Positions 26,201-60,344 of a stretch of 61,768 nt of DNA are shown here, in pieces (the first letter of the stretch is position 1; each line of letters begins with the position of its first letter). Below the pieces are notes generated by a model that had not been told where the DNA came from, ran no database searches, and saw only the letters and a list, made by a program, of their open reading frames with translations. The DNA is taken from assembly GCF_001194135.2 (NCBI RefSeq), contig NC_068983.1, forward strand, positions 119,860,221 to 119,921,988. The letters are read 5' to 3'. Source of the stretch: Octopus bimaculoides. Its lineage: Eukaryota. Made by a program: the position numbers and the translations under genes.

Positions 26201-29200
26201 TTATATTACATCATCATCATCATCATTGTTTAACGTCTGCTTTCCATGCTTGCATGGGTTGGATGATTTGACTGAGGATTGGCGAACCAGATGGCTGCAC
26301 CAGGCTCCAATCTGATCTGGTAGAGTTTCTACAGCTGGAGGCACTTCCTAACGCCAACCACTCCAAGAGTGTAGTGGATGCTTTTACGTGCCACTGGCAC
26401 GAGGGACAGTCAGGCGGTACTGGAAACAACCACATTCAAGTGGTGTTTTTTACATGCCTCCTGCACAGGAGCCAGTTCAGTGGCACTGGCAACAACCTCG
26501 CTCGAATGTTTTTTCACGAAGAATTTTATGAACTCTTGAGAGAACATGATTTTTTTTTTTTTGGAACAGTATATCTTGGAACACACATAAAGCTATAAAT
26601 AAAACATGTAAATATTGGGTTAAAAAAACCCTGCTGGACAGAAACAGTGAAGGTTACCCATGTATCTGTAATTCTAAGTAAGCAAATTTTACTTCAAAGT
26701 GAAATTAATGAATTTGTAATGGCACTTTGCCAAAAATAATGATTTCAAAGTGAGATTAACACAAAAAGATTTAACTGAAAATAAAATATCATAACATTAT
26801 TTGTAATGTTAATGAAGTTGCCTAGTTAACGATATGTTTTCATTAAGCAAGCAATGAGGCAAAAAGTTCACCACATGACTGCATTACCTTCATGTTTTGT
26901 GGCGAGTTAAGCACAGTAATAGCAACTAATGCAAATTTACATCTTGCAATGTAACTTTTCTAACACCTTTGTCCATTACTTTTGGATAGGGAAAGTTCTG
27001 GTTTTTGTGAATATTTTATATGAGATGCACCCCTATTCATAGAATATATCAGGAGATATTTTGAACATCTTGAATGGAAATTTTGATCACAGTTTCCATT
27101 CAAGATGTTCAAAATGACTACTTTGGGTTAAAATATACATTATATATATATATATATATATTTTAAATGACAAAATTCATACTTACTGCAAGAGCTGTCC
27201 CAATGATTCCACCACCAAATGCACATGTACCAAACATTCCAAAGACAGAGTTACGTAATCTCTCAGGGAACCATTCTCCTAATACTTTCACACAATTTGG
27301 CCAGCACTGTGCCTGCAAATAAATGTTTAAAAATATCAATGCTATTTGGTGTTTTCCTACTCATACCACAGTTTCCATATGATGGCAAAGATTAAGTACA
27401 TCTAAATAGCACTCTCTGTTATCGTATTCTCAGATATTTCTTCACTATTTCTCAGTTCTTAAACACAAATCTGAACAATTTTCTGCTTAATAAACACAAC
27501 TGATAGTCATCACAATAAACAAAAGTAGAGCTATATCTCCTTACTGTATCTGTCTATTACTAATATTTTTTATTGCGGATATTGGACAGATTTCTAATAA
27601 TCTGTTATTTTATTTCTAAATATATATTGGGCCATCCCATAAATAATGCAGTTTTTTCAATTGCATGAACTAAAAGTCTGAGGGGGACAGGATAAACTAC
27701 CTGCATCAACTTGCTATAAAAGCAGGTAGTAATTTTATCTTGTACTTATTCTTAGTGCAAGTTTTGAAGTGTGCAGTTCGATTTTAACGGTTATTTTTTT
27801 CAAAGCTATAATGGAAGGGACAAAGGAGCATATTCAGCATATTTTGTTTTATGAGTTCAATAAAAGCAACAATGCAGTGGAAAATGCAAGGAATATTAAT
27901 GCAGTATATGGGGATCAGACAATAAGTGTAAGTCAATGTCAATGGTGGTTCCAGAAATTCCGAGCCAGAAACTACAGCCTAAAAGAAGACGTCCTGCAAA
28001 CCCTGGTGGAACAAAATTCCATCATAACTGTTGAGGAACTAGCAGAGAAGCTTGGATTTGGTCATTCAACCATTCATCAACACCTGTGTGCCATCAGAAA
28101 AGTCAGCAAATTGGGTCAATGGGTTCCTCACAAACTTTCCGAGTCTAATCTCGCACAGAGAATGAATGTGTGTTCTTTGCTGTCTCATGAATGAACCTTA
28201 AAAATTTAGTCTTCTTTATATCTAAACAAAGTCATCTTTGCTTTTTCACTAAGTGAAATCCACAGGTACATAAAAAAGATGATCTTCACATATTTCACAC
28301 TCTTCCATTTTCATATCTATCCCAGTAAATCTGCACATTCTGCTCGTTTAAAAGTAAATATGTATTCATTGATCAAGCCTAAGTTAATGAACTATAAACT
28401 TAGTTGAACTTAATGCACTAGCCATCTTCCTACAAATACTTGACCATAAATTATTTAGGCTACTTTGTTTTATAAGAAACATTGAAAATAGGGAGAGAGA
28501 TAGAACAGAAAAAAAGACAAAAAAGAATAAAGGAAGATAACCATACATGTAGCCTACAGTTTCTAATCCTATGTTAATGTAAACTAAATTTAATTTAACG
28601 AAATTAATTTACTAGTCCAATCAATATGTGGCAGTAACCTGTTTGAGTTTATTAAGAATACAATTTATGAATGTAAACAGTAAACAGTGGTGAAGGGAAA
28701 AAAAGGGAAAAAATATCAGCAAGGTGCAGGTGTGGTTGTATGGTGAAAAGTTTTCTTTCCAACCACATAGTTCCTGGTTCAGTGCCACTGCATGACTCCG
28801 TAGACATATGTCTTGAGCCAACCAAAGCCTTGTGAGTGGATCTGGTAGATAGAAACTGGAAGAAGCCTGTGTTTTTATCTACAATGTGTCCAACAGTAAC
28901 AACAACTGCAACACTAGCATTAACAGCAACAATGGTAGTAATACCAGCAGCAACAGCACCAGCAGGAGCAATGGCAATGATAATGGCAGCAACAACAGTT
29001 GCGGCACCACTGGCATAGAGGCACAGACACACAAATACATTGGGATCTACAGAGGATTCCTTCAAGCAGCATCTTAACACAGGGGTTTTCAAACTTTTTG
29101 ACTTGCGGACCCCTTTATATTTCAGGCTTTACCTTAGGGACCCCCTTATAAACGCTTATGAAATTTATACATAAATATTTGCTTAAAATAACATATATTT

Positions 29201-38800: not shown

Positions 38801-41800
38801 AAATAGATTTTCTTTTTGCCGTTTTTAGCCCGAAATTTGTTTCGTTTTTATGTGTGGAGAGAGAGAGTGAAAGAGAGAGAAAGAAAGAGAGTGAGTAAGT
38901 GGGTGACGAAGATTACCTAAACATTGAATGGGTTGGGTGGTTTGACTGAGGACTGGCAAGCCAGGAAAATCTCTTCGGGATTATTATATATATATATATA
39001 CATAAAATTTCATTGAAAATAACTCCATTTTCCTAAAAGTTATGAGGGAAAAGCTCGGATCTTGTGAATTTTCCGAAGTCCTCTCCCCAACCTCCCGTTA
39101 CTTTGCGCACATTTTGTTTTTTTCATATTCGTTTCCTACACATTGTTCTACACCCATTCCAGTATATTTTTTGGATTTTCATTTCCGAGCCAAGATGTGA
39201 ACTTTGAAAGTTAGAATTGAGCGAAGATGCAGAGGTTATAGAAGTTAGTGGTAACAAAGTGAGGAGAAGTAGACAATAAATTCATCTTTAAAATAACACG
39301 TTAGAGTTTTCGGATGTATGAGNNNNNNNNNNNNNNNNNNNNNNNNNNNNNNNNNNNNNNNNNNNNNNNNNNNNNNNNNNNNNNNNNNNNNNNNNNNNNN
39401 NNNNNNNNNNNNNNNNNNNNNNNNNNNNNNNNNNNNNNNNNNNNNNNNNNNNNNNNNNNNNNNNNNNNNNNNNNNNNNNNNNNNNNNNNNNNNNNNNNNN
39501 NNNNNNNNNNNNNNNNNNNNNNNNNNNNNNNNNNNNNNNNNNNNNNNNNNNNNNNNNNNNNNNNNNNNNNNNNNNNNNNNNNNNNNNNNNNNNNNNNNNN
39601 NNNNNNNNNNNNNNNNNNNCCGAAAACTCTAACGTGTTATTTTAAAGATGAATTTATTGTCTACTTCTCCTCACTTTGTTACCACTAACTTCTATAACCT
39701 CTGCATCTTCGCTCAATTCTAACTTTCAAAGTTCACATCTTGGCTCGGAAATGAAAATCCAAAAAATATACTGGAATGGGTGTAGAACAATGTGTAGGAA
39801 ACGAATATGAAAAAAACAAAATGTGCGCAAAGTAACGGGAGGTTGGGGAGAGGACTTCGGAAAATTCACAAGATCCGAGCTTTTCCCTCATAACTTTTAG
39901 GAAAATGGAGTTATTTTCAATGAAATTTTATAGAAATACCTTTCAAATGGCATACATTACGATTATAAAGAAATTTGTGGGGAAAAATCTTTTCCAAAGG
40001 ATGGGGGAGAGGACTTTGAAAACTTCACAAGATCCGAATTTTGCGGGTCAAGATATAGGGGTTAATATTCAGGTTATGGGGTATCAAAAGATTCAGTACT
40101 ATTTCCACTACTAACAACTTTAAAATTATAATCTTTTCCATAAGATATCTATCGTAAACATTCTATACGACAACCATGATGACGTCATATTTTCTATGAG
40201 TATGTACCTTAAAAGACATCCACCATCACCTTCACTCACTATCTCTCCCCCTTTCTCTCTCACACGTGCACGCACAGACACACAAAATCTTGATTTTCCT
40301 CTAACATCATGGCTTTATGCAACTGTTGCGATATCACTCTTTATGAAGTTCTCCGTTTCCACGGCAAAAATAACACTGCCATTACATTTTTCATGGAACA
40401 CAGTGACCTGCCATTTACCTACAATTGTCCGACATGTAATTTTCCATGTATTTTGCGGAAGGAAACGAACATGTGGCATTGTCGTAGGATGGTACGACGA
40501 TGTCACCAATCCAGAAGGCAATATGGATGTTCTGAATCTTTATTGAAGAACTCCTTTCTGGAAAACACCCAAGTTCCGCCTTGGAAGATATTGCTCAGCA
40601 CAGCTTAGTCGTACAGATTAATCGAGGAAAATCTTGGATTCTCCCGTAAAACCTCTGTAGATTGGTGGTCTTTCTGCGCTGAGGTCTGCCAGTTTGGGGC
40701 AGAAAACCACCAAAATATGATCGGAGGAGATGGGGTTGAAATTGAGATCGATGAAACGGTTCTGGTCCATCGAAAATATCAACGCAGCAGAATAATCAAA
40801 ACAGTTTGGCTTTTTAGTGGACTGGAACGCTTGACGAAGAGAGCATTTATGGTCCCACTTTTGACGGAATGTGGCGAGGGCAACAGAAGGGATGTTGACA
40901 CCTTCATTCCTATCATTAGACGCTACATCAGGCCGCGATCAATAATTTATAGTGACTGTTGGTGTGCGTATAGTAACTTGAGCAGCATGGGCTATACACA
41001 CAATCAGGTTAATCAATCTGAACACTTTGTGGATCCCCATAACCCAGCTATTCACACTCAGAATATTAAGCGTTTATGGGGAAGCCTGAAAAGTGCACTG
41101 TTCGTCCCGGAATGAGACCGAAGTATCTCAAATAGTATGTTGCTAGGTTACTTTTTATACCGGCCATCTCACCCCCAACTCAGTGACTTCGTAGGTTTCT
41201 TTTGAAAGCTTGAAGACTGTACCCATGTTCCTGAAGACTCGGAAGAATTGGTTCTTGATGTTCAATGACCCTTAAGTGTTTTCTATCATGAAACGATATT
41301 CAACACCATATTTATGAAACCATTCGGATAAATTTTTACAAGTGCACCTCCACGCAGTTCATAAAAAAAACCCTCGGATTTCTCGCGTGTAATCACCTAC
41401 CCTGACCTCCTAATCTGCCGCAAATCCCTTATTTTTCTTTAAAAAAAAAAGGATGGGGCAGGAAACTGGAACCCCACCTTCCTGAAATTATTTGAAAATG
41501 TGCATAAATAGGAAGTATATTCTACAGACCCCCAAAAAATACATAAATGACAAAGCACACCTTTACTCACTCTCTCCACGCGAAATCGAAGCGTACTAGT
41601 TACCGCTTAAAATTGTTCAAGGAAAGTTGAAACACCTGATGCCATTTCAAAACTGTTTTGCAGCTTAGATCTTATANNNNNNNNNNNNNNNNNNNNNNNN
41701 NNNNNNNNNNNNNNNNNNNNNNNNNNNNNNNNNNNNNNNNNNNNNNNNNNNNNNNNNNNNNNNNNNNNNNNNNNNNNNNNNNNNNNNNNNNNNNNNNNNN

Positions 41801-44800: not shown

Positions 44801-45613
44801 CCACGTTTTAGGCTATGGAGATTCCGATTCTGAAAAAAAAATTTTTGAAAAATTTCAATCCCTCCCCCCACCAAACAGGCTATTTACATGCTAGAAATAA
44901 CAGCCAAATCTCACAAAACTAGTGTTAGGGTTAAGGTTAGGGTTAGGGTCAGGGTTAGGGTTTGAGTTAGGGTTAGGTTTACCCTGTGGATCTATATAAA
45001 ACCGGGGGGGGGAGGATCGAAATTTTGAAATTGAGATTTTTGAAAAATTTTTTTTCAGAATCGGAATCTCCATAGCCTAAAACGTGGGATTCCGTTAAAA
45101 AAACAAAATTTAAAAGGGGGGGGTATACCCAGATTACATATACTCCATCTCCACCCCTTTTTTTATGCGAATTACATTCGTTTTAGAATGTGGAATGAAT
45201 AATACTGAAGAGAAAAAGAAAAAGCATATTTAATTTTGTGTCGTGGCAATTATTCCAAAGGCACAATGAAGTAGGATGGGATTAAAGTTTGAAAAAAATT
45301 CTTTCATGTGAATTACTTGTGAGATGCTATTAAATTTATGAATATCAAAAAAAGACCATGTATACATTTGTGAGTGTGATGAAGGTGTTTATTTATATAT
45401 GGTATAGTAACATTTGTAAGCAAAGCATTTTAAAACTGCTTTCGGTCGAGTGCATAATAGAAATATAAAAATAAAGAGATGAAGTAAATTACATACCACT
45501 CCGAGTGGTTTTCTCAGTAAATAGGTCGAAGCATAAGACAACCAACCTAAACAGAAAACCAGTACTTGTTTACTTCGTAGAAGTGACATGTCGAAAGACA
45601 TTTGGGAAGACAT
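2748..45613 (-). CDS. 13-exon gene, SLC37/GlpT-family (OPA) MFS sugar-phosphate:Pi antiporter, 428 aa; join complement(45497-45613,37767-37859,33331-33411,31073-31141,27187-27312,25638-25697,23051-23123,19635-19695,14894-14984,11711-11805,9152-9312,6850-6924,2748-2932)
   Basis: All introns are GT-AG with compatible phases. Exons total 1287 nt = 428 codons + TAA. Family-like motifs: YASTYLLRKP, LGWLDTALLLPYA, GDKIGPR, WPNCVKVLGEWF, KVVRYCMFMWLP, FEVGGVLG, FNCGPDSILG, GFVNGFGSIG. Confidence 0.93.
3270..4416 (+). mobile_element. DNA transposon 3' fragment, probably CMC/Chapaev-like, interrupted by a SINE
   Basis: CNMSIKIHFLNSHLDQFPSNLGAVSDNQGERFHQDI..MMADYCW motif; terminus ...CCCAGTG at 4416; superfamily assignment from recall. 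Confidence 0.65.
3806..4218 (-). mobile_element. tRNA-derived SINE (abundant family A), full length
   Basis: Minus-strand head with A/B boxes (TGGTTGTGTGG, GGTTCAGTCCC), internal (TA/TG) tract, AG-rich tail; homologous copies elsewhere in the window. Confidence 0.85.
6850..6924 (-). CDS. SLC37-like exon 12 (AAVPSRIGELNGRNAGAAVVGFVNG)
   Basis: tcccag| ... ATG|gtaagc; 75 nt. Confidence 0.92.
7373..7596. mobile_element. TTAA-flanked (piggyBac-like) MITE inserted into a LINE 3' tail
   Basis: ttaa-ccct ... aggg-ttaa ends; related copy at ~24420-24638. Confidence 0.7.
8684..8895. mobile_element. Tc1/mariner-type MITE
   Basis: ~30-bp imperfect TIRs tacaagggggtgctgaaaagttcctggcttt / aaagccagaaacttttcagtaccctcttgta with TA ends. 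Confidence 0.75.
9152..9312 (-). CDS. SLC37-like exon 11 (FFSKGPLFGTG...LAGAFNCGPDSILG)
   Basis: ctgtag| ... TAG|gtcagt; 161 nt. Confidence 0.92.
9436..9650 (+). mobile_element. Short SINE with Nin/Deu-like core; similar copies at ~6430-6620(-), 20650-20910(-), 37970-38170(-), 44060-44220(+)
   Basis: Shared ttttcatcctttc.g.gtc.ataaaata..acc core after a tRNA-like B box. Confidence 0.6.
9655..9900 (-). mobile_element. R4/Dong-like non-LTR retrotransposon 3' end
   Basis: PMVIRALG..LQKAALLGTAHILRKVL C-terminal motif; adjacent (TAA)n. Confidence 0.7.
9903..10560 (+). mobile_element. Tx1/L1-like LINE ORF2 C-terminus and 3' UTR, 5'-truncated
   Basis: ORF 9907..10341 with degenerate C..ET....L.QCP zinc knuckle and FVERW motif; AATAAA at ~10554. 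Confidence 0.65.
11711..11805 (-). CDS. SLC37-like exon 10 (LKYSKSKAGIFSIAFEVGGVLGSALIGFVMDR)
   Basis: ttctag| ... AG|gtgggt; 95 nt. Confidence 0.92.
12020..14350 (-). mobile_element. Old, fragmented RTE-type LINE with an internal MITE insertion
   Basis: EGTCRRGRPW-like C-terminus at ~12100-12170; degenerate ORF-like sequence at 12950-14350. Confidence 0.5.
14894..14984 (-). CDS. SLC37-like exon 9 (MVFDVALAVFCLKVVRYCMFMWLPMYLYNE)
   Basis: ttccag| ... GAG|gtaaga; 91 nt; inside ORF 14801..14983. Confidence 0.93.
15255..15892 (-). mobile_element. Young RTE-type LINE 3' fragment with (GAT)n tail
   Basis: RWYGHVVRMEEDSCVKKC..EGTRGRGRPRKTWAEVV..D...W; family 3' UTR; contains an N gap. Confidence 0.9.
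17465..17687. mobile_element. hAT-like MITE
   Basis: 15-bp perfect TIR agcatttctcaacct / aggttgagaaatgct; no TSD recognised. Confidence 0.6.
17688..18155 (+). mobile_element. Helitron PIF1-like helicase C-terminal fragment
   Basis: GLPPHELHLKVGVPIMLLRNL..CNGT, QFPIKLCFAMTVNKAQGQSL, VFSHRQLYVGCSRV; intronless and N-terminally truncated. Confidence 0.85.
19050..19450 (-). mobile_element. SINE-like repeat ending in (TAA)n
   Basis: End sequence gagtgagagagca beside (TAT)n recurs at ~22156. Confidence 0.5.
19635..19695 (-). CDS. SLC37-like exon 8, central loop (ENQNPTEEKKKMSYFEIMKIP)
   Basis: tcacag| ... CC|gtaagc; 61 nt, phase 1 to 2, joins exons 7 and 9 in frame. Confidence 0.87.
20933..21737 (+). 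mobile_element. Young RTE-type LINE 3' fragment with (GAT)n tail
   Basis: ERNEASMLRWMC..RRLR..EGTRGRGRPWKTW; near-identical to 15255-15892 in the opposite orientation. Confidence 0.9.
21880..22100 (+). mobile_element. R4/Dong-like non-LTR 3' fragment, degenerate
   Basis: RLWKKKVITAAVVIGALGTIPK motif; (TAT)n downstream. Confidence 0.6.
23051..23123 (-). CDS. SLC37-like exon 7 (LSFGILVFMLFQQPNELNIEVPGK-)
   Basis: tttcag| ... AAAG|gtgaca; 73 nt, phase 0 to 1. Confidence 0.87.
23202..23292. repeat. Compound (TG)n/(AG)n microsatellite
   Basis: Direct observation. Confidence 0.95.
23847..24232 (-). mobile_element. Full-length tRNA-derived SINE (family B) with 11-bp TSD
   Basis: A box TGGTCCAGTGG, B box GGTTTCAATTCC, (CAA)n tail; TSD accttccatag at 23836-23846 and 24233-24243. 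Confidence 0.9.
25638..25697 (-). CDS. SLC37-like exon 6 (VYLQTSYGWRNAFTLPSIIV)
   Basis: gaacag| ... GTT|gtaagt; 60 nt; YGWR motif. Confidence 0.92.
27187..27312 (-). CDS. SLC37-like exon 5 (AQCWPNCVKVLGEWFPERLRNSVFGMFGTCAFGGGIIGTALA)
   Basis: ttgcag| ... GCA|gtaagt; 126 nt. Confidence 0.93.
27625..28190 (+). mobile_element. Mariner transposon 5' half (TIR, HTH, WVPHKL), internally deleted
   Basis: EHIQHILFYEF..ARNINAVYG..WFQKF..LGQWVPHKL. Confidence 0.85.
29080..29376. mobile_element. hAT MITE
   Basis: 16-bp perfect TIR caggggttttcaaact; 8-bp TSD tcttaaca on both sides. Confidence 0.9.
29440..30100 (+). mobile_element. Degenerate RTE-type LINE 3' fragment
   Basis: KGRLYDAC..LHGSET..RLERNEATMLHWIC..RRLCWLGH; frameshifted. 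Confidence 0.8.
31073..31141 (-). CDS. SLC37-like exon 4 (MTFGMWSNFTTFVILLFLNGTAQ)
   Basis: ttccag| ... CAG|gtaaag; 69 nt. Confidence 0.92.
31190..31600 (+). mobile_element. SINE family A; further copies at ~18460-18680, 28723-28880, 46507-46900, 51333-51668, 51808-51975(-), 61160-61250
   Basis: Same head, body and tail as the 3806-4218 copy. Confidence 0.85.
33331..33411 (-). CDS. SLC37-like exon 3 (ILLGSVGDKIGPRKTFGFCLVFSGLSM)
   Basis: tttcag| ... ATG|gtaagt; 81 nt; MFS motif A-like GxxxDKxGxR. Confidence 0.93.
35810..35879. repeat. (GA)n microsatellite
   Basis: Direct observation. Confidence 0.95.
36020..36760 (+). mobile_element. Degenerate Hero/NeSL-like non-LTR retrotransposon C-terminus (zinc knuckle and restriction-like endonuclease)
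   Basis: TL.HIL..C.KALG; GLLATA.D.ELKADLGKQLKF; LRPD; GWQARC..I.V..RGF across frameshifts. Confidence 0.7.
37767..37859 (-). CDS. SLC37-like exon 2 (VKTDLEQSLHIPREKLGWLDTALLLPYAFMQ)
   Basis: ttccag| ... CAG|gttaat; 93 nt. Confidence 0.92.
38717..38932. mobile_element. Fold-back MITE (almost wholly palindromic)
   Basis: cccattcaatgtttaggtaa / ttacctaaacattgaatggg termini; ~95-bp imperfect arms. Confidence 0.7.
39620..43055 (+). mobile_element. Merlin (IS1595/ISXO2-like) DNA transposon with long TIRs; disrupted transposase ~40309-41270
   Basis: CPTC zinc finger, IGGDG..VEIDET, VWLF.G.ER, SDCW.AY..L, HTQNI.RLW; ~39890-40060 is inverted at ~42890-43055. Confidence 0.8.
44735..45155. mobile_element. 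Long-TIR MITE with internal telomere-like repeat
   Basis: 48-bp perfect inverted arms 44793-44840 / 45048-45095 plus degenerate outer arms. Confidence 0.75.
44925..44978 (+). repeat. Degenerate (TTAGGG)9 array
   Basis: 9 hexamers, 5 of them perfect TTAGGG. Confidence 0.85.
45497..45613 (-). CDS. SLC37-like exon 1 (MSSQMSFDM...YASTYLLRKPLGV); the true start could be any of three Met codons
   Basis: ORF 45389..45613; donor GTG|gtatgt; 117 nt, phase 0. Confidence 0.9.
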
Positions 45614-46040
45614 TCTCCAAACCGATCTTCCTTTATAAACAAGTCAGTTGAAGAGAAAGAGAGAGACGTCCGGTAGCGAAATAGAGCGAGAATAATTCGA
45701 GTTATGGGACATTTGCCAGTCTCTGACTTCCTGTAACTCGACTCCGATCACCAACTGATGTTGAAAATGTCAACGGTAGATAACTCCAACCGGTACTTGG
45801 GACAATGTGAGTCGTTATTCGCTTTATTTTCACAGACAATATAATATGATTGATTCGATATTATTACCAACTTTCAAACTTTACTACTATTTCATTTGTT
45901 AAACACTGACTTCTGTGGGGAATTAAAGAAGAGAGTTGTCACCGGTCAGATTCAATCTTAGAACAGGAAAATACTGGGGCTGTCTCATTGCTTTCGCCGC
46001 CGCAAAATATTGTATTTTCTGTATTAAATCGATGGTAAGT
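45614..46040. promoter_or_regulatory. Probable bidirectional promoter and candidate plus-strand first exon(s)
   Basis: Locally CpG-richer unique sequence just upstream of the minus-strand ATG; plus-strand donors CAAT|gtgagt (45807) and ATG|gtaagt (46035); ETS-like ACTTCCTG. Confidence 0.55.
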
Positions 46041-48469
46041 AACTGGATATTTTACTCAGTTATTTTAATACATTTCTGACATACAGTTTTATAGATATTT
46101 ATTGACTTTGGGGATTGATGTCACAGTTCTTTCTTTTTTCTTTTTGTTGTGCATTACCTCGAGTTTCACATATGTATAAAACGGAGGAACCTCTATGCAG
46201 TTGCTCGGTTTGCTAGCTATACCAATGAAATCTCCCTCAAATAATACCCTACTATCTTAAATAAGGAAAGAGCGCTTTACATAATGTAGTTGTCCATACC
46301 TCTAAAATATCGAAGTGGTTTGCTTGTTCAGAAGTGACTAAGAGTTTAAAAAAACTAAAATCCTCTTTAGTTTCCTTGGTTTAGGAAACATATACACAGT
46401 TTAATTTCCGAACTGTGTCGTATATATATTTTAAGGCAATCTTTCGTTATATGCACTTAAAAACGGTACACTTTTATTTTTCAGGGATATAGATTTATCT
46501 CTTTTAAGGCGCAGGCGTGTTTGCATGGTAAGACGCTTGCTTTCCAATCAGATGGTTCCAAGTTTATTCTGCCTGGCACCTTCGGCAAGTGCCTTCTGCT
46601 ATAGCCTCGGGTCGATCAAAGCTATGTGAATGAATTTGATAGACGGAAAGTGAAAGAAGCCCGTCATATATGTATGTATATATCCATCTTTGTGTATGTG
46701 TTGGTCCCCCACCACCGCTCAACAACCGGTTTTGGTGTGTCTACGTCCCCGTAACTTATCTGTTCGGCAAAAGAGACCGAGAGAATAAGTCCCGCGCTTT
46801 AAAAAAGTCCTGGGGGTAATTTGTTCGACTAAAACCATTCAAGGCGGTGCCCCAGCATGGCCGAAGTCAAATGACTGAAACAAATGAAAGATAAAAGATA
46901 TATAGAAAACACCACTGCACCACACCCACTCTAAACATAAACTACACTCAACTAAAGCTTTCACCATCGTTCCAAATGTCACGCCTCACTATCTCCGAAG
47001 ATCTCTCCTGACGAAAGCATACCTTTAGCATAGTTAAGACCACATCCCAAAGACTAGCCCTTCTCTTTAGAGGTTATTTCAGAGGATATTTCAGCCCCTA
47101 ACAGCTGCTAATGCTCTGCAGGCTTCAACGGAATTCCACAGTAGTTTACTGCTGCCACATCTGGAATAGTTCTGCTACTATGCTCATTACAGTCTGAATT
47201 GCATCCAGAGAAAGACCTCTTGACAGATCAGTGCTACATCTCTAAAGTATACATCCAGTCTCTGGACTACAGATCTGCTGGTGTGCTGTCTCCCTCCCCT
47301 TCTCTCCCCTTTCTCTCTTTCCTATCTTCTGCCCTGCAGATCCAACAAATCTTCTACATCCACACCCAGGTACTCCGTCCCACTTTTCTTTCCACCTTTC
47401 TTCAACATAAAAATGCATGCTATTATTAATATATATATGTAGCAGTATTGACTACCATACCTGTGTAAATGATTGCTCCTGCTGCACACACACACATACA
47501 TTGTAATGTTGCCTAGCAAGGGAAAACACACAGAAACTAGACTTCAATGAAAATGACAATTGACTACAAAATATATTGCATCCTTTTGTAAATATATATT
47601 AAGAATCAATGCAGTTGTTAACATAACAATAAATACATAATCATGTCATATGAGCACGATGTTCTATTGATTTAAATTGGTCTTATATTTTAGCCAATCG
47701 AATATGTTGAAGATGAGCCTACTCTGATGTCTACTCTATTGTGGCTTTTATAGGCCTATAAAAACTACAATAAATCACCAAGAACTACCACTTCACTAGA
47801 GAAATCTCTGCATCTCGATGTCAAAGAAATCTGTAATTTTCTGAGCCTTAATACATGATTGACATTTGAAAGTTCAGGCAGTGTGACAATAATAAAGATT
47901 TGTTATGGTGAAAGTACAGATAATTTTTTTGACTTTTCCCTCATAATTTATTGCTATGAATCTTATTCATCATCATAATCGTTTAACGTTCATTTTCCAT
48001 GATGGTATATGGGTTGGACGATTTGACTGGGGTCTGGGAAGCCTGGAGGCTGCACCAGGCTCCAGTCTGATCTGGCAGTGTTTCCAACTGTAGAAACACT
48101 GCCAGATCAGACTGGAGCTTGGTGCAGCCTCCTGGCTTCCCAGACCCCAGGCAAATCGTCCAACCCATGCCAACATGGAAAACGGATGTTAAACGACGAT
48201 GATGATGAATAAGATTCATAGCAATAAATTATGAGGCAAAATCAAAAATAATCTGTACTTCCACCATAACATATCTTTATTATTGTCACACTGCCTTCTG
48301 TGTATGCATGCTTATAGTTGGTACTATTGTGGTTATATGACTGAAGTTTGAGTCTGATGGTGCCACTTTTCTTTCTGGCTTTACAGTGTAAGCATGGCTA
48401 CTCCATTAACAATGTGCACCAAAGAAGAACAAAAAGCAGTGATCTGAGAGATGGTAATGGTGAACCAGT

Positions 48470-48900
48470 TCACCATTACCATATCTTGAGCTTGCTGAAT
48501 CTTCTTGTCAGTGGTGGAGGTTGATGGGCGTCCTGCTCTCTCTTCGTGCATCCCACTTATCTGGCCACTTTTAAACTTCTCGATTCATTCATACACACTT
48601 CTATGCGGTAGTATACTGTCCCCATATTGTGCTAAAAGCCTCTGATGAATTTCAACACCTGACACACCTTCCAACCAGAGAAATCAGATCACTGCTCCTT
48701 GTTCTTCTTTGGTGCACATTGCTAGTGGAGCAGCCATGCTTACACTGTAATGCCAGAACGAAAAATGGTACCATAGGCTCAAACTTCGATCACGTGACCA
48801 CAATAGTACCAACTATAAGCATGCATGTGCAGAGAGGCAGTGTGACACTTATAAAGGTATGTTATGACAATAGTGCAGATAATTTTTGACTCCCCCTCAA
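48470..48900 (-). mobile_element. Mariner 5' end (TIR and transposase N-terminus), part of a compound fold-back
   Basis: MAAPLAMCTKEEQ.AVI.FLWLEGVSGVEIHQRL.AQYG..RSVYE.IEKFK..GRP. Confidence 0.8.
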
Positions 48901-50463: not shown

Positions 50464-50538
50464 ATGTCTGAAGCTGGTGCCAGTGGTGGAAAGTCACCTG
50501 ATAATCGTGATAAATATTTAATGAACCTTATGTCAAAG
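50464..50538 (+). CDS. BUZ gene coding exon A (MSEAGASGGKSPDNRDKYLMNLMSK)
   Basis: Polypyrimidine tract, then aag|ATG ... AAG|gtatgc; 75 nt. Supported by splice signals and composition rather than homology. Confidence 0.7.
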
Positions 50539-51783
50539 GTATGCCTATAAACATTTCATTGAAAAATTATCTGAAACCTCTTTTTCTAATTTGCTAAAAG
50601 GTAACCATAACAACTTGACATCTACCTTAAAAACTCTTAGCTTTTTACATATATTGATTTTTCTGCACCATCAACAGCTGTTGCCATGTGATAAATATAC
50701 ATAATGATTTTAATTGGTGTTTTAAGTTTCAGAATGGTAACGTGTAATGTATTACATCATCATCATTATCATTTAATGTCCACTTTCCATACTTGCATAG
50801 GTTAGATGAAATACATTGACACAAAATTTTCTAGGGTCAGATGCCCTTCCTGTTGCCAACTCTCACCTGTTTCCTAGTAAGGAGTTAATATTTCTCTATG
50901 GCCAGTTCTTTTTTTATTTTTTTGTGAAAAACTGAAAATACACAGCTTAGCTGGTATGATAGTGATACTCATTTTTAACTATTATATGATGTCTAGACAA
51001 GAGTACACCCAAACACATACACACACACATTTATATATATGATAACACAAATGGGTTGAAGCTCACAATAGTTGTTTCATATGTTTTTATTGATGAACAA
51101 ATGAATTACATCATGTAAAAAAACTGTTTTGCTTTACATGAATAAAAAATAAAATTTAACATTTAGGGTTTTTCATACAAATAGTATATATTGTGTATTG
51201 ACTCTCATCTCAGTACTGTATGAGAGTAAAAAGAGAATGCTTTTCTATATCATGTTATCCCCAACTCTACCTTGGTACTTTTTTTATTAAAGTACCTTGA
51301 TTCTACTGAATCCTGAAAATAATTATATATATAGGTGCAGGAGTGGCTGTGTGGTAAGTAGCTTGCTTACCAACCACATGGTTCTGGGTTCAGTCCCACT
51401 ATGTGACACCTTGGGCAAGTGTCTTTTACTATAGCCTCGGGCCAACCAAAGCCTTGTGAGTGCATTTGGTAGATGGAAACTGAAAGAAGCCCATTGTATG
51501 TATATATATATATGTATATATGTGTGTGTGTTTGTATTTGTGTTTGTCCCCCACCATTGCTTGACAACCAATGCTGGTGTGTTTACATCCCCGTAACTTT
51601 GCGGATCAGCAAAAAAGACTGATAGAGTAAGTACTAGGCTTACAAAGAATAAGTCCTGGGGTTAATTTNNNNNNNNNNNNNNNNNNNNNNNNNNNNNNNN
51701 NNNNNNNNNNNNNNNNNNNNNNNNNNNNNNNNNNNNNNNNNNNNNNNNNNNNNNNNNNNNNNNNNNNNATGTGTATATATATG

Positions 51784-51816
<33 letters not shown>

Positions 51817-54800
51817 GATGTGCTTCTTTCAGTTCCTGTTAACCAAATCCGCTCACAAGATTTTGGTTGACCTGGAGCTGTAGTAGAAGACACTTGCCTA
51901 GGGTGCCATGCAGTGGGACTGAACCCCAAGATTACACGGTTAGGAAACAAGCTTCTTAAACACAATAATGCCTATGAAAAATAGGTAGTACCTGTAGCTT
52001 TCACTGGCCTTCTGAGAATGGTGAGATTGATGTACTTGATAAAATGTTTTCAAGTCAACATCTGAAAACATAAGCATGAAGGAAATTCCTATGATCTAGG
52101 GAGGAAAGATTGGCCAAAGTGGTTGCTGAGCTTTAATGGGATTGATACAGTAGTATAGTGAGAGAAGAAACCAATGCTGTTGGTTTGGCCTATTTGGCAG
52201 TCATATGCATCTGGGTAGTTCAGGGGAGTAGAGACCATAGTTGTAACAATAAGATAGATATTATGTCTATGGACCAGAGGTTGTACTGTGTTAATGAGTC
52301 ATTGATAATCAGTTGGATGGTCTTCCTTTAGATGTGGTCTAGGAATTTTATGTGTGTATATATATAATGGCAACAACATACTAGTGTGAAAGCCATTGTG
52401 GATATTTATTTATTTATTGTGCTATGTAGAGTGTAAACAGCTGCTGAAATGTTCCTTTTTTAACTTTATGCTAATATATTTTGAGGTCTCTTGTCTCAGG
52501 CTTAAATCTCACACGTAAAGGATCAATAAGTAATATTAATATGTGAACATCGATTTAAGTGATTACTCACTTTCCTACAAAATTTTTCCCACATCTTTTT
52601 CTCAGATCTCCAATCCTTTGTAAACAAGCACTCATCATCATCATCGTTTAACGTCTGCTTTCCATGCTAGCATGGGTTGGACGATTTGACCGAGGACTGG
52701 CAAGCCAGCAGGCTGCACCAGGCTCCAATCTGATCTGGCAGAGTTTCTACAGCTGGATGCCCTTCCTAACGCTAACCACTCCGAGAGTGTAGTAGGTGCT
52801 TTTACATGCCACCGGCACGAGGGCCAGTCACACGGTACTAGCAACGGCCACGCTCAAAAAGGTGTTATTTATGTGCCACCTGCACGGGAGCCAGTACAGC
52901 GGCACTGGCAACAACCTTGCTCAAATGATTTTCTAATGTACCACCAGCACAAGTACTAGAAGGCGACGCTGGTAACGATTACGCTAAAACGGTCCTATTT
53001 ACAAGCCACTAGCATGGAAGCCAGACAGCTGCTCTGGCAATGAACACACTTGGACAGTGCTCTTAGCACTCCACTGGCGCAGGTGCCAGTCATCGTGTAT
53101 GGTTCAATTACGATTTCAATTTCACTTGCTCCAACAAGTCTTCGCAAGTAGAGTTTAGTGTCCAATGAAGGAGAGGTTGGCATGGGTGCCAGTCATCGGA
53201 TTCGGTTCGATTTCAGATTTCAAATTGCAAATTCACTTGCCTCAACAGGTCTTCTTTGCAAGCAGAGTTTTTAGTGTCCAATGAAGTGAGCTGGCTTATA
53301 TTGGTTTTTGCAGTTTATTTTATTTTATTTTAATTTGAGAATACATCATTGTCATCATTAACATGTTTTCCTTGTTGTCATGGGTTGGATGAGTTTGATA
53401 GGATCTGGTAAGCCAAGCTCCAGTGTCTGCATTGGCATCATTTCTACAGATGAATGCCATTCCTAATACCAGCCCTTTTACAGTATGAATCAAGTACTTT
53501 TTCTTCATGCCACTGTCATTAGTGAAATTGCTAGTAGTGTGCAAAACATAAGAACAGGGAAAAATAAAGAGGAAAAAGTTCCCACCATTTTTTCCTTTTT
53601 CTCTGATCTTTGTACAGGTTATTTTCTGTCAGTATTTATGTAATCTTAATATATAAATCTGAAATTGTGTGTTTGTGTGAAGCCTTTTTGAAAGTTTATA
53701 GAAATCCACATTTTCCACTTTTTCGTAAAAATGTTTACATCAATGGAATTTTCTCGATCTGAACTTTCCAGTGCAGTAATTAGATTTTTAAAATTCCGTT
53801 TACTTTGTGTGATTTAAGGGAGATTTGGCTATCGTTTCTAGCAACATTTATATTCCTTCCCTTCTCCCTGTACCGGCGTTATTATAGGGAGTAAAAGAGG
53901 GAGAGGGAGAGAGAGAGAAAGTGATACATACAAAGTCATAGATTAACTTGGTTACATTTTACACTCTTACTTCTTCTTCCTCTCTCTAATATAATACCTT
54001 TCCTCTACCTCTAACATATTTTTCATAACATAGAAACGTAAAAACACACACGACCACACATACGTGATCCGTGACAACAACATACACATAAACACATACA
54101 CAATTCAACGTTATAGATATAAGATTTAGTTTCTGTGTTTCTTATATAAACACGTGCACGCATTGCTATTTTATAACTGTCTTCCGTTCTCACTTTCTCT
54201 CTCNNNNNNNNNNNNNNNNNNNNNNNNNNNNNNNNNNNNNNNNNNNNNNNNNNNNNNNNNNNNNNNNNNNNNNNNNNNNNNNNNNNNNNNNNNNNNNNNN
54301 NNNNNNNNNNNNNNNNNNNNNNNNNNNNNNNNNNNNNNNNNNNNNNNNNNNNNNNNNNNNNNNNNNNNNNNNNNNNNNNNNNNNNNNNNNNNNNNNNNNN
54401 NNNNNNNNNNNNNNNNNNNNNNNNNNNNNNNNNNNNNNNNNNNNNNNNNNNNNNNNNNNNNNNNNNNNNNNNNNNNNNNNNNNNNNNNNNNNNNNNNNNN
54501 NNNNNNNNNNNNNNNNNNNNNNNNNNNNNNNNNNNNNNNNNNNNNNNNNNNNNNNNNNNNNNNNNNNNNNNNNNNNNNNNNNNNNNNNNNNNNNNNNNNN
54601 NNNNNNNNNNNNNNNNNNNNNNNNNNNNNNNNNNNNNNNNNNNNNNNNNNNNNNNNNNNNNNNNNNNNNNNNNNNNNNNNNNNNNNNNNNNNNNNNNNNN
54701 NNNNNNNNNNNNNNNNNNNNNNNNNNNNNNNNNNNNNNNNNNNNNNNNNNNNNNNNNNNNNNNNNNNNNNNNNNNNNNNNNNNNNNNNNNNNNNNNNNNN

Positions 54801-57800
54801 NNNNNNNNNNNNNNNNNNNNNNNNNNNNNNNNNNNNNNNNNNNNNNNNNNNNNNNNNNNNNNNNNNNNNNNNNNNNNNNNNNNNNNNNNNNNNNNNNNNN
54901 NNNNNNNNNNNNNNNNNNNNNNNNNNNNNNNNNAATTGCTTCATTAGAAATTGCCATCCTACCTCCTACTAAAAGGGATTACCCTGCTATATATATAATC
55001 AGGGCAGCGCAAAAAGTTGTTTTGCACAAGCATTTCTACAGCCAATTAGACGGATGAAATTTACGTACGCTTAATAATGTTACGCCTTCAGACTTTCCCT
55101 ATTAATTTCATCGTCTTTTGAATTATGAACATATTTACATCATACGGGTTTTTCCGTTGTAAGGCTTTCTTTTTTAGTTGATTTTCACCTAGCAAGACTT
55201 ATCGTAGAAGGCGTAATAAGTCACACCCGGACAAGGTCGGGTTATACTGATAGTTATCATATAAAATTCAAGTTTTCAATGCACTGCTTTTTTTAGCATA
55301 ACATTTTATCCAATTTTTTTTTCAATTTTTTATATGTGTGTACTGACTAGCTTTTCAACTGAAGAATCCTTAAGCATAAATTTTAACCATCTCTTGGCTA
55401 TATTACCATTTTTATAAGAGCAGTGAAATATTTCTTCTATTATATAATATACTTTAGCATTCCATTGCATAGTACTGCTCTCATTATGGAATGGATGACT
55501 TCTTTCACTGACATCTTTGGCAGCATTCTTATAGTAATTTCTCTAATGAATAATCAGTCGAGCAAAATTACCATCAACTTTATACCTGCAAAAATTGTGC
55601 CATCACACACTTCAATATCATCTCTCACTTGTTAGTAATTGGAGAAAGGTTTTACATGCTGTTTCTTAAGATATTTCACACAACCCCTCACATTTGTGGC
55701 ATTGGTCCATCACTTGAGAAGTCACTTTGGTAAGTTTGTTCTTCTGGAAGTGATTGTTCTAAAACTCATTATGTTTATAGAGTTTCTATTGGAAGATTTG
55801 TTTTTCACATAATGTATCTAAGGTATATCAACCTGACTGTCCATTCTTCTCCAAGTTAACTGCAAATTCTTCAGTTTTATGGTGCTGCCATTCTTCATTC
55901 TCGAACTATTTCATTCTTTGGTTTCTACCCACAAGTAGTACTCACAGCTAAATGACCTGTCTAGCACACTATCAACTTAGTCATTTACTGTTCTATTAGT
56001 TTTTATAGACTTGTGTGAACATGTCAATATTTGAACACTTACAATGGCACAAAGGCCACATATTTACAGTGAAGGAGAGCCAAGATTGTGTAGCAATCAT
56101 GCCTTGCTTAGATATTAGTTTGGGAATACACTGCCCAAATTTTCTTTAAAAACTTATATATAAGAATTACATCACTTGTTAAAGTTATCGCTACATATTT
56201 TCTATAGAAATTATAGCCAGTACTGATTTTGTTCCAATGTTTCATATCCTAGTACACTTAAGCATTTAATATACTTTCTAGTATATTATGATTGCATAAT
56301 GAAATATGGTGTCCCTACAGGCCATAAGAATTACATTCTTTTCTGCTTTTTTACATGTACAAGTGATATTTTAGAAAGTATATTTCTTTTAATACTTTGT
56401 GTATCATTCTCCTTTCAGCAGGAATCTATGTACTGTGTTCAACCTTTAACTTGGTGTCCACATCTTGAAAAAGTAACTAGTGTTCCTCCACAAGGTCTTG
56501 ATACATCGTCTCCATGTGAAACATGTGGGGATACAAATGAAAATTGGGTGTGTCTTACTTGCTATAAGGTATATATATATATATTTTTTTTAATTGTGTA
56601 AAATTAGGTTTTTATTATTGATTTCTCAGTGATCATTCTATCCAACCAGTGTTGATTCCCTTCAACACTGAATTAACATAAACATTTCTTTTTCATACAT
56701 AACAGACATTGAAATGTGGTTTGATAATTGTTCAGATTTACATACAAAGGTTTTAATAACATAGGTAATCAATTCAGGATGTATACAACTCTAGAGATGT
56801 TCTAAAACTAACTCTTCATTTTCGTGTATATATTCAATTCTGAATAATTATGATGATTGTTCTTAATAACATTTAATTGTTCCTCAAATGATTATTTCTT
56901 TTTATTCTTTGCAACCTTATTCAATACTTGTTTCTTTCTCTCATTGTTGTGAACACTGGACTCAATGCTTTTGGTAATCAATTATGTCTTTTTAAATTCA
57001 GAGTTCAAACCTCACCAGAGTCAATGAAATAAATGCCTGCAATCGGTTGTTGCCAAATTTATGGTCTTTAGCCTGTTAGAAATTATTGTTAATATTTAGA
57101 AACAATAACAGTTTTTACACCACTACCACCAACTAAATATCATTTATTATAAATATCAGGATAACTATGATACCATTTTGAACAGATGTGCCTTTCTCTA
57201 TAATGAATAAATTGTCATATATATATATTTAATTACTGGATTTTACAGGTTTTCTGTAGTCGATATGTACAAGAACATATGGTAAAGCACCATGAAGTAG
57301 AACCTGACCATTATATAGTGTTAAGCTATGCAGATCTTTCTGTATGGTGCTATGGATGTAACAGTTATGTTGAACATGAGGTAAGTGAATGTCAAAAATT
57401 TAACTTTTAAGTTAACTATTTCAAACCACAAAGGCTGTAGCTGTGTAACCCTGGTCAGCCCTCATCAAACAAAGCTATGTTGTTCCAACTTTTATCATCA
57501 GCGTTCTCTGATCATCCTGCCTTCATTTATGGTAACCCAACTTCATTTTCAGATGGTAGGATATGCTTTGAAGGAGATCTATTAGCTCATGCAACTGTAG
57601 AAGTTCCTTTTTACCATGTAGGTTGAGACAGGAAAATAAAATTAAAGAACTGGTTAAAGCACAACTCAGACATGTAGGACTGCCCATTCTCCATGCATAC
57701 ACACATTCAAAAAATAGAGTGCATGTTTGATGTGACTTAATAAATGCCTTCATAATCAGGCTTTTAAGAATTGGTGTTTAGCCTGTTTCATGAGGTGGAG

Positions 57801-59800
57801 TAGATGAAAAATAGATTTTTCCGTGGACAGAATGCTGGTCTTTTGTAAGCAACATTCCCAGAAAATCTGGGGCCTACTCCTGTCAGTGAAGTGAAGCTGA
57901 GGTAATGCTGAATAAAGTATTCTGCACAGAAACTGAAGTAGGTTTGAATTTATGTTATGACCCATAAGTAGATAGTCCAGTGCCTTGTCTGCTGAATCAT
58001 TCCTCATTGTTTCATAGATAAACTTTCACTCTTACACACACACACAAGATGGGACAGGCTGAGGAGTCAGTGTTACACAGGGCAATATCCAAGTACGAGT
58101 GGAGACATCCATGTACTGCATCACCACAACCCACAGAAGAGAAAGAGCATGCCTTTGTGCAGGTCAGGGAAGAAGTCTGGGTTAAACCCCCCAAATGCAT
58201 GGTGCACATCACAGTGGGGAAAGGGGACAATAACCTCTGTAAATTCGAGGAACAATGTGTCCATAGATGGCATGCCACGTCATGTGTTGGATGTGTGCAG
58301 GATCATCACTGCAACGGAGGATGGAGCCAACAGTAATGGACAAGAGGACAAAGCCAGCAGCAACATGCCAGGAACTGGGGCCATTCCTGAAGCCCCACGG
58401 CAGTCACAGAGAGAGCGGTGCCCTCCACACTGGTTGGCTGATTACGAGACAAGTTAAGCCGTGTGGGCAAGTTAGTTGAATGATCTTCATATCAGTGGGN
58501 NNNNNNNNNNNNNNNNNNNNNNNNNNNNNNNNNNNNNNNNNNNNNNNNNNNNNNNNNNNNNNNNNNNNNNNNNNNNNNNNNNNNNNNNNNNNNNNNNNNN
58601 NNNNNNNNNNNNNNNNNNNNNNNNNNNNNNNNNNNNNNNNNNNNNNNNNNNNNNNNNNNNNNNNNNNNNNNNNNNNNNNNNNNNNNNNNNNNNNNNNNNN
58701 NNNNNNNNNNNNNNNNNNNNNNNNNNNNNNNNNNNNNNNNNNNNNNNNNNNNNNNNNNNNNNNNNNNNNNNNNNNNNNNNNNNNNNNNNNNNNNNNNNNN
58801 NNNNNNNNNNNNNNNNNNNNNNNNNNNNNNNNNNNNNNNNNNNNNNNNNNNNNNNNNNNNNNNNNNNNNNNNAGAATCGTTTGTTTATGTAGTCGGCACT
58901 TAATGTATATCGGCTGAATGGACGTCAGTGATTGGTTGAAATTACAAAAATACGACAACTTTAACATGGAATAACTTATGGATTTCTTTTTTTTTTTAAG
59001 AAGACTAAGAGAAAAAGATGTTTTATATGACACATTCTACCAGTGTTTCAAAGTGTTTCGTTAATGAAAAATGTGGCCCCCGTTTTAAAAAAGATCTGAA
59101 GTGGGGCCTGTGGGTCCTGACGGAAGGGCCACAGTGAGCATGCAGGGTCAGAGAGGCATAAACGGTCAGTTGGTGGCAGACAGTGCATCAGAGTATACAG
59201 TGATGGACAGCGCACATGGACGTTGAAAGCGACCCTTTTCCAAACTAACAGGTAAAACTGCTGCAATTCTCTCTTTGCTTCCATCTTTTTCCTCTTTCAC
59301 ATCACATATCAAATATGAATTCATCTACTAGAGATATTCTCTTAGTTCACTTTGAATTTTCTGTATCTAAATATGCTGACACAACAGAATCGATCGTTAG
59401 TATTATATAGTGTAATCACCAATTAAAGATGTGATTTTTCCATTCTTTTTTTTTTTTTTCGTTCTTATATATACAAATTTCTTGAAATTCTTCTAAATGA
59501 TATTTGGATCTACTTGTCATATGCAAGGAATTACTTGGGATGTTTATTCTACTTGCATTTATTGGGTTCTGATGGTCAGATATAGTTAACCTAATTCATT
59601 TAATACTGAAAGCTTTATTGATATCTGCCTGGATCTTTTAATTCCTTTTACTTCTTATTACATACATATATGTACAAATAAATACATACACACACACACG
59701 CATTTCATTATAGATTCTTGATTAATTATTTTGTTTCTGTTTTCTGTAGCTAATCCAAAATGCCAAGAAAACTGCATGTAAACATAAATTTGGAGAATAA
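50464..59800 (+). CDS. Stand-alone HDAC6-type ZnF-UBP (BUZ) domain protein, 134-135 aa; join(50464-50538,56419-56568,57249-57380,59750-59800)
   Basis: GT-AG introns, all phase 0. The translation WCPHL..CETC..ENWVCLTC..CSRY..HM..HH..H..LSYADLSVWCYGC.SYV..KFGE matches the HDAC6 C-terminal zinc finger and its KFGE tail as I recall them. Confidence 0.88.
52633..53250 (-). mobile_element. RTE-type LINE 3' UTR/tail; other tail-only copies at ~7078-7250, 8050-8240, 20030-20320, 25050-25240, 26210-26520, 30600-30900, 32420-32610, 50757-50900, 53340-53520, 60193-60344
   Basis: Recurrent catcatcgtttaacgtc..ccatgctagcatgggttgg..ctggatgcccttcctaacgcca. Confidence 0.85.
54934..55254 (+). mobile_element. 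Possible non-autonomous Helitron 3' end
   Basis: GC-rich hairpin acccggac-aag-gtcgggt followed by a degenerate CTAG-like end (gatagt). Confidence 0.4.
56419..56568 (+). CDS. BUZ gene exon B ((Q)ESMYCVQPLTWCPHL...ENWVCLTCYK)
   Basis: tttCAGCAG tandem acceptor; AAG|gtatat. Confidence 0.92.
57249..57380 (+). CDS. BUZ gene exon C (VFCSRYVQEHMVKHH...LSVWCYGCNSYVEHE)
   Basis: ttacag| ... GAG|gtaagt; 132 nt. Confidence 0.93.
57600..58460 (+). mobile_element. Degenerate Gypsy-type LTR retrotransposon pol (integrase/C-terminal) fragment
   Basis: YEWRHP, VWVKPP..C..QWGKG.IT.VNSRNNVSIDGMPRHVLD, R.S.R.R.PP.WL.DY. Confidence 0.7.
59750..59800 (+). CDS. BUZ gene terminal exon D (LIQNAKKTACKHKFGE*)
   Basis: tttctgtag| ... 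TAA; KFGE motif; AATAAA at 59951. Confidence 0.88.
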   Translation, partial: LIQNAKKTACKHKFGE

Positions 59801-59956: not shown

Positions 59957-60344
59957 AATCACTAAAACTTCTTGTTAATAAATTCATAACTATCATTACT
60001 TCAACATTTTCAACCTTGGCACATAGGGGATAGCAGTACAATCTCTCCTGGAAACCTATGCAGAAATTATTTTGGACTAATCGCCATATTCACAGTATTT
60101 CAGACATCAAAAGTAATGGGGTATCATCACTCTTTTTTTTTTTTTTGTTTGTTTGTCACTGAGATATATATATATATTTATAGATATATATATCATCATC
60201 ATCATCGTTTAACGTCCGCTTTCCATGCTAGCATGGGTTGGACGATTTGACTGAGGACTGGTGCAACCGGATGGCTACACCAGGCTCCAATCTAATTTGG
60301 CAGAGTTTCTACAGCTGGATGCCCTTCCTAATGCCAACCACTCA

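Follow-up and report, generated by a model that had tools for sequence, protein, structure and literature searches.

A short gene of Octopus bimaculoides encodes an HDAC6-type zinc finger without a deacetylase domain and was likely derived from the last four coding exons of HDAC6

HDAC6 couples the deacetylation of tubulin and Hsp90 to the sensing of free ubiquitin ends, in processes that include the handling of aggresomes and stress granules and the uncoating of viruses, and drug programmes now aim at its zinc finger separately. In this work we analyzed a stretch of 61,768 nt (36% GC, with nine N gaps) from chromosome CM046603.1 of Octopus bimaculoides (GCA_001194135.2, approximately 119.86-119.92 Mb), called the window throughout, which carries a gene for a stand-alone HDAC6-type zinc finger (ZnF-UBP, also known as BUZ). 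We consider it likely that the octopus BUZ gene is genuine and is translated on its own in coleoid cephalopods, that it encodes an HDAC6-type finger and its leader and nothing else, and that it derives from the last four coding exons of HDAC6. The domain itself and the listing of the gene in RefSeq are known already; what is new is the architecture and the history, that is, an independently translated finger gene under selection that was cut from HDAC6 at a defined intron and that has a counterpart in mussels. A search of the literature on HDAC6 in octopus, squid and cephalopods, on its evolution in invertebrates and on stand-alone ZnF-UBP proteins returned no paper on the octopus BUZ gene.

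Direct reading together with tblastn established that the BUZ gene has four GT-AG exons on the plus strand, and that all the junctions are in phase 0. The exons and the introns that contain assembly gaps occupy the following positions of the window.

50464-50538 (+): exon E1, caag/ATG...AAG/gtatgc, with the start codon right behind the acceptor; it encodes the leader that precedes the BUZ domain, MSEAGASGGKSPDNRDKYLMNLMSK, and its counterpart is the fourth-last coding exon of chiton HDAC6.
50539-56418 (+): intron 1, 5880 nt as assembled, with gaps at 51669-51768 and 54204-54933 and with repeats inside that resemble short interspersed nuclear elements (SINEs).
56419-56568 (+): exon E2, tttcag/CAG...AAG/gtatat; N-terminal half of the ZnF-UBP, QESMYCVQPLTWCPH...NWVCLTCYK.
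57249-57380 (+): exon E3, ttacag/GTT...GAG/gtaagt; core of the ZnF-UBP, including R80, Y81, W108, Y110 and Y115 of the pocket for the ubiquitin C-terminus.
57381-59749 (+): intron 3, 2369 nt as assembled, with a gap at 58500-58872.
59750-59800 (+): exon E4, ctgtag/CTA...GAA TAA; C-terminal helix LIQNAKKTACKHKFGE, followed by the TAA stop codon.

The product has 135 residues, a leader of 25 residues followed by a complete HDAC6-type ZnF-UBP that ends in KFGE; it is thus a protein of roughly 15 kDa formed only by the finger and a short HDAC6 motif that precedes it. A NAGNAG tandem acceptor at 56419/56422 (window positions 56416-56424, cag/CAG/GAA) allows a second form of 134 residues that lacks Q26. 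The O. sinensis models likewise include forms with and without Q26; in Argonauta this place reads CAA, and there is therefore no second acceptor.

The three gaps that fall within the gene are all intronic. The alignment of the spliced protein is unbroken over every exon junction when compared with chiton HDAC6, and that of the domain is likewise unbroken against the solved HDAC6 fingers; in addition, the orthologous loci of Argonauta hians (L001) and Sepia pharaonis (L008), which are free of gaps, contain these four exons in unchanged order and orientation, and no additional coding exon. From these unbroken alignments and gap-free loci it follows that no coding sequence is hidden in the gaps. 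The octopus locus that was fetched through its RefSeq protein (L003) matches the window at 100% identity, shifted by 36,031 positions and with identical gaps. Catalytic exons of HDAC6 were searched for by tblastn with the chiton, abalone and mussel proteins, with an HDAC6 that is unplaced and with human CD2 as a probe; neither the window nor the locus of Argonauta or that of Sepia contained any. An earlier note on this DNA, made from the letters alone, had read a stand-alone HDAC6-type BUZ gene of four phase-0 exons and 134-135 residues, with a leader of about 25 residues and a complete domain that ends in KFGE, without a deacetylase domain and with internal gaps that hide none; all of this has stood, and the exons were re-read, so that their boundaries are now exact.

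The annotation agrees with this architecture. RefSeq names the O. bimaculoides protein "histone deacetylase 6" and lists isoforms X1-X7 (XP_052822454-63) of 134-147 residues; O. sinensis has isoforms X1-X5 of 134-151 residues, and O. vulgaris a single form of 134 residues. All 13 isoforms of the three Octopus species are therefore short (134-151 residues) and carry the zf-UBP domain only. The name is misleading for the octopus BUZ protein, given that Pfam shows no deacetylase domain in it: the protein lacks the tandem Hist_deacetyl domains (PF00850) in one polypeptide that characterize HDAC6, a class IIb deacetylase, and zf-UBP is the only domain reported. A protein of 135 residues that is called "histone deacetylase 6" and has no deacetylase domain will mislead automated inventories of cephalopod genes.

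The finger is of the HDAC6 type, as opposed to the USP/BRAP type, according to its sequence, its predicted structure and the exon boundaries that it shares with chiton HDAC6. The match to Pfam zf-UBP (PF02148) covers profile positions 1-61 of 63 with 69.7 bits (cut-off 22.7, E=2.6e-19). The closest solved structures are HDAC6 ZnF-UBP domains (zebrafish 5g0f, 1.1e-37; human 5b8d, 4e-35), to which the identity is 51-57% over approximately 103 residues, and USP-type fingers appear at 1e-11 or worse. The 12 predicted zinc ligands are all present (C38, H40, C58, C61, C70, C73, C78, H85, H89, H96, C109 and C112, aligned to the human ligands) and are invariant in 22 relatives. The pocket residues W68, R80, Y81, W108, Y110 and Y115 correspond to human W1143, R1155, Y1156, W1182, Y1184 and Y1189, and all of them are kept; the ligands and the equivalents of the Gly-Gly pocket that had been recognized in the earlier note are thus borne out by alignment to the human HDAC6 finger. 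A 2026 survey of the human ZnF-UBP domains reported that a key Arg and up to five aromatic residues separate ubiquitin binders from non-binders (PMC13493902); judged by its residues, the octopus finger carries the Arg and aromatic signature of the subclass that binds the ubiquitin C-terminus. An AlphaFold2 model built with 22 relatives has a mean predicted local distance difference test score (pLDDT) of 83.7, which exceeds 90 over most of the finger and falls to 56-71 in the leader, where one short helix is predicted. Superposition of the model by Foldseek on the ZnF-UBP of human and zebrafish HDAC6, complexes with ubiquitin and RLRGG included, gives a target template modelling score of 0.86-0.93 and a root mean square deviation of 1.6-1.8 A, and the top 12 matches are all HDAC6.

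The octopus protein thus resembles the HDAC6 ZnF-UBP (human 3C5K, 3GV4 and 3PHD; zebrafish 5G0F) in its fold, the set of ligands for three zinc ions, the Arg/aromatic Gly-Gly pocket, the C-terminal KFGE helix and the G-A-C-G-G linker motif that precedes the finger; in contrast to it, the octopus finger is not tethered to a deacetylase and has its own ATG and its own 5' exons. The fingers of USP5, USP3, USP16, USP49 and BRAP2 belong to the same Pfam family, and those that are binders recognize the free ubiquitin C-terminus in the same way; however, they are far more distant from the octopus finger (1e-11 or worse, 14-30% identity) and always lie within larger enzymes.

The leader encoded by E1 (50467-50538) includes the motif G-A-C/S-G-G and, about 10 residues further on, a short hydrophobic helix; this arrangement precedes the finger in HDAC6 proteins that range from sponge to fish, and the motif is present in every stand-alone version. 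The relatives that were compared for it include P0261, P0216, P0186, P0213 and P0034. To our knowledge no function has been assigned to it. The motif falls outside the HDAC6 finger constructs that have been crystallised. Its conservation in all the stand-alone versions suggests that the module includes a part still to be studied.

The origin of the gene is indicated by its introns. The full-length HDAC6 of the chiton Liolophura sinensis (1174 residues) has two catalytic domains and the finger, and its last four coding exons read EAADGACGG...LLSQQ, GYDAMYAV...CYK, VYCSRF...DNQ and IIHAAK...stop. Octopus exons E1-E4 correspond to them one to one, with introns that are identical in position and phase; this match identifies the octopus gene as the last four exons of HDAC6, relocated or severed at the DNA level, and not as a retrocopy. 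It would have arisen by gene fission or by a partial segmental duplication of the last four coding exons of an ancestral HDAC6, in the course of which a formerly internal exon would have gained an ATG at its first codon. This formerly internal exon would now be fed by new 5' exons, probably from a bidirectional promoter shared with an SLC37-like transporter gene that runs the opposite way and whose start codon is approximately 420 bp from the place where the new exons begin.

The octopus BUZ protein is under strong purifying selection. Between Octopus and Argonauta, 104 of the 135 residues are identical, and the estimate of the ratio of nonsynonymous to synonymous substitutions (dN/dS), a step proposed in the earlier note, gave 0.067 by the Nei-Gojobori method (dN 0.121; dS approximately 1.8, which is saturated); the finger by itself has a ratio of 0.051 and the leader one of 0.159. 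No alignment between the two species was obtained for intron 2, the one intron tested. These values bear on the view that the gene is a decaying relic, or an artefact of annotation, without a function. Many short "HDAC6" entries in other genomes are indeed fragments of gene models; nonetheless, a ratio of 0.067 over 135 codons with saturated synonymous sites, a reading frame, splice sites and start codon that are intact in Octopus, Argonauta and Sepia, and the retention of all the metal ligands and pocket residues make a relic or an artefact extremely improbable.

The evidence for independent translation comes from the 5' end of the gene. The RefSeq isoforms differ only in the choice at the NAGNAG acceptor (Q26 present or absent) and in three alternative 5' exons that add 0-12 residues, all of which are situated between the transporter gene and E1.

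46032-46034 (+): end of alternative 5' exon a, ATG/gtaagt; it adds one extra Met in RefSeq isoforms X4 and X6.
47818-47832 (+): coding part of alternative 5' exon b, MSKKS/gtaatt; isoform X3.
48821-48856 (+): coding part of alternative 5' exon c, MHVQRGSVTLIK/gtatgt; isoforms X1 and X2.

The ATG at the first codon of E1 is kept in Octopus, Argonauta and Sepia, whereas the chiton has Glu at this position. In Sepia an in-frame TGA is located three codons 5' of the conserved ATG with no AG in between, hence this exon cannot be read in frame from upstream coding exons. These facts have to be weighed against the explanation that the four exons are still the 3' end of one giant HDAC6 gene, with the catalytic exons more than 50 kb upstream, the transporter nested in a huge intron and the short isoforms produced from internal promoters. 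Genes of this kind do occur in molluscs: the RefSeq full-length HDAC6 of Haliotis rufescens joins the catalytic domains and the finger over 330 kb with a nested gene inside, in Batillaria an HDAC-only and a BUZ-only model lie on the same strand 64 kb apart, and short models of Tegillarca and Pomacea fall, at 90% identity, into the same clusters as transcripts in which the catalytic domain is joined to the finger. Moreover, the E1 acceptor of octopus abuts the ATG and upstream exons do splice to it in frame. Against a giant gene, none of the 13 RefSeq isoforms from three Octopus species is long, the stop codon of Sepia stands just 5' of the conserved ATG, this ATG is kept in coleoids and absent in the chiton, and the 5' exons cluster beside the start codon of the transporter. 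We consider a giant gene quite unlikely.

The search for the deacetylase half that would complete the history of an autonomous finger gene gave no candidate that could be accepted. No cephalopod HDAC6 with a deacetylase domain was present among the best 120 proteins obtained with either a sea-urchin HDAC6 query or a profile of the catalytic domains of four molluscs, and insects score inside the best-120 range of the latter; the absence is unproven, given that each search was read to its best 120 proteins, that the word-based search returned short proteins only, and that the library searched exhaustively holds one representative per 50% cluster. P0399, an HDAC6 mRNA without a finger that encodes 843 residues (Logan run SRR27896758), was a candidate for the cephalopod half on account of its GC content at third codon positions of 0.27, which matches octopus genes. 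It was rejected: it groups with molluscs in 5 of 100 bootstrap replicates, its usual partners are unnamed sequences, and the run accession appears in no paper.

These searches also concern the explanation that the octopus gene is a partial duplicate, in which case cephalopods would keep a complete HDAC6, finger included, at another place in the genome, and the octopus gene would be a supernumerary copy of the 3' end of that HDAC6. This is the situation in Mya arenaria, in which an HDAC6 of 1192 residues with a finger coexists with a copy of 140 residues on a different chromosome, and a cephalopod full-length protein may be missed by a word-based search that returns short proteins only and by a library reduced to one representative per 50% cluster. 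On the other side, the labelled cephalopod entries among the finger-tree matches listed are three short proteins only, and no cephalopod is found among the best 120 HDAC6 proteins with either query, though insects score within range. An intact full-length gene elsewhere is, on balance, unlikely, though a precedent for it exists. The earlier note had offered two alternatives, that HDAC6 has split in this lineage or that a partial duplicate was formed; neither of them is singled out by our data, and no cephalopod deacetylase gene was located.

Several points weigh against the reading of an independently translated gene cut from HDAC6, or against its consequences. The support for expression of the octopus BUZ gene consists of the existence of the RefSeq models. 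The position of the octopus acceptor directly before the ATG makes an in-frame junction from far-upstream exons physically possible, and gastropod HDAC6 introns of 64 kb to approximately 300 kb can occupy exactly this position. With no cephalopod deacetylase HDAC6 in the best-120 lists, fission, duplication and loss of the enzyme half are indistinguishable. Finally, the binding of ubiquitin by the octopus finger is predicted from its conserved residues.

Annotated short finger-only proteins (110-170 residues) come from cuttlefish, mussels, Mya, several gastropods, amphioxus, Saccoglossus and crustaceans, and an exhaustive search of 1.84 billion representatives with the finger returned 63 proteins of all lengths at E <= 1e-30. 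In a neighbour-joining tree of the fingers, a short domain analyzed without bootstrap, each short protein stands beside the full-length HDAC6 of its own lineage (Mya; Mytilus and oysters; Saccoglossus and hemichordates; shrimp and crab). The idea of a single old bilaterian family of stand-alone fingers was rejected, given that the short proteins form no single clade in this tree. The earlier note had proposed a phylogeny of the BUZ domain that sets HDAC6 against USP5/BRAP, and had left room for the short protein being an already described, widespread family: a tree of the finger was built, with the outcome just given, and such proteins are annotated in RefSeq in octopus and in many other invertebrates, but no paper that describes them was found and they are not one family.

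The short proteins are of three kinds: fragments of gene models, partial duplicates and true splits. Many of the short annotations belong to the first kind and are pieces of HDAC6 genes with giant introns. The Tegillarca and Pomacea models that cluster with joined transcripts are fragments, and the same is indicated by a finger-less HDAC6 model and a short model on one contig in Batillaria, Elysia, Nucella, Plakobranchus, Pomacea and Babylonia. The Mya arenaria HDAC6-like protein of 140 residues is similar to the octopus protein in having only the leader and the finger, yet it is a clear partial duplicate, being the sister in the tree of the finger of the intact Mya HDAC6. Mytilus and a related mussel-like sequence represent the true splits. 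In Mytilus, proteins of 147-148 residues named "histone deacetylase 6-like" (e.g. XP_063440611) share with the octopus protein the four-exon block, the intron positions and the layout of leader plus finger; their origin is independent, however, since in the finger tree they group with the full-length HDAC6 of oysters and not with cephalopods, and their first exon extends 5' of the old acceptor, whereas octopus E1 starts at it. The mussel-like transcript P0004 is a spliced mRNA of 1.1 kb with a complete open reading frame of 144 residues and an in-frame stop codon 5' of its ATG, and the Mytilus deacetylase gene lacks a finger and is located on a different chromosome from the finger gene of 148 residues. 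From the sequences that were compared, similar short genes arose independently in mussels and in Mya.

Other proteins found in these searches depart from the usual layout. The Mytilus HDAC6-like proteins P0336, P0338 and P0335 (1072-1105 residues) have lost the finger and end instead in an unrelated, conserved tail of approximately 100 residues (…FPEINFIQLLRAKQKTLE…VLYVHIY…), and the same tail occurs in a transcript. In the protist Paratrimastix pyriformis, a protein annotated as HDAC6 (P0031/P0177, 395-420 residues) is made up of three HDAC6-like ZnF-UBP domains in tandem and lacks a deacetylase domain, and further proteins of the finger search carry two to four fingers.

The neighbour of the octopus BUZ gene is transcribed divergently from it, and two features define the space that separates them.

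45497-45613 (-): first coding exon of an SLC37-like MFS transporter, with the start codon at 45613 and an approximate lower boundary; the RefSeq coding sequence was mapped through the octopus locus fetched by its RefSeq protein.
45614-46031 (no strand): putative bidirectional promoter, approximately 420 bp between the two divergent coding starts, with GC up to 0.42.

The transporter gene (2751-45613, minus strand; 428 residues in RefSeq) is more than 43 kb long, runs off the start of the window and contains six of the nine assembly gaps. Its product matches Pfam MFS_1 (5.9e-24), and the solved structures closest to this product are those of SLC37A2 and SLC37A4, which exchange glucose-6-phosphate (3e-14 to 7.5e-9). 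The transporter start codon is located 4.85 kb from E1, which agrees with the earlier reading of a divergent transporter gene 5 kb upstream, though the first 5' exon of the finger gene is only about 420 bp away. This head-to-head layout is that of a bidirectional promoter, which the two genes probably share. The same head-to-head MFS neighbour exists in Argonauta; no MFS exon was found within 10 kb of the finger gene in Sepia. A wider synteny between the transporter and HDAC6 in molluscs was considered and discarded, with no MFS gene adjoining chiton HDAC6 or the finger genes of Batillaria and Mytilus.

Several elements of other kinds were observed in the window. An open frame of 248 residues at 17409-18152 (+) contains a Pif1 2B domain (3.6e-15) together with a weak match to the C-terminus of a UvrD/Herpes helicase, and is probably the remnant of a Helitron-type helicase within a transporter intron. 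A second transposon remnant in a transporter intron, at 40609-41112 (+), has an open frame of 168 residues with an ISXO2-like DDE transposase domain (DDE_Tnp_IS1595, 3.7e-08). Two arms of 319 nt (38995-39313 and 39620-39938) that are 99% complementary exactly flank the gap of 297 N at 39323-39619; they look like an assembly artefact rather than a biological palindrome. Finally, a repeat of approximately 150-300 nt, probably a SINE, occurs in both orientations in copies that are 87-97% alike (52629-52912, 15253-15521, 21549-21741, 26214-26513, 60194-60344 and others); one copy lies in intron 1 of the finger gene and another just downstream of this gene.

It has been established that the HDAC6 finger binds the unconjugated C-terminus of ubiquitin (structures 3GV4 and 3PHD; PMC3268394, PMC9065369). 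By its pocket, the octopus finger would bind the Gly-Gly ends of free ubiquitin and of unanchored chains; with no deacetylase tethered to it, it would be confined to reading, sequestering or bridging, and its role would be that of a reader, a buffer or an adaptor for free ubiquitin ends, uncoupled from deacetylation. It may buffer these ends, protect unanchored chains from being taken apart, or use the leader to bring in a partner. The roles of sensor, adaptor or inhibitor put forward in the earlier note are likewise predictions. In our judgement, the conservation of the leader motif as well favours a role as reader or adaptor over pure competitive inhibition.

As a broader proposal, possible though still short of likely, we suggest that coleoids took HDAC6 apart, in such a way that the finger with its preceding motif became an autonomous, strongly constrained gene under a promoter shared with a sugar-phosphate transporter gene, the deacetylase half became a separate gene or was lost, and the same intron was broken independently in mussels. 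Animals that keep the finger as a separate gene under selection would offer a natural separation-of-function experiment on an untethered reader of ubiquitin ends. If the proposal is true, the finger together with its G-A-C-G-G leader would be a self-sufficient functional unit, and the two activities of HDAC6 would be separable in nature.

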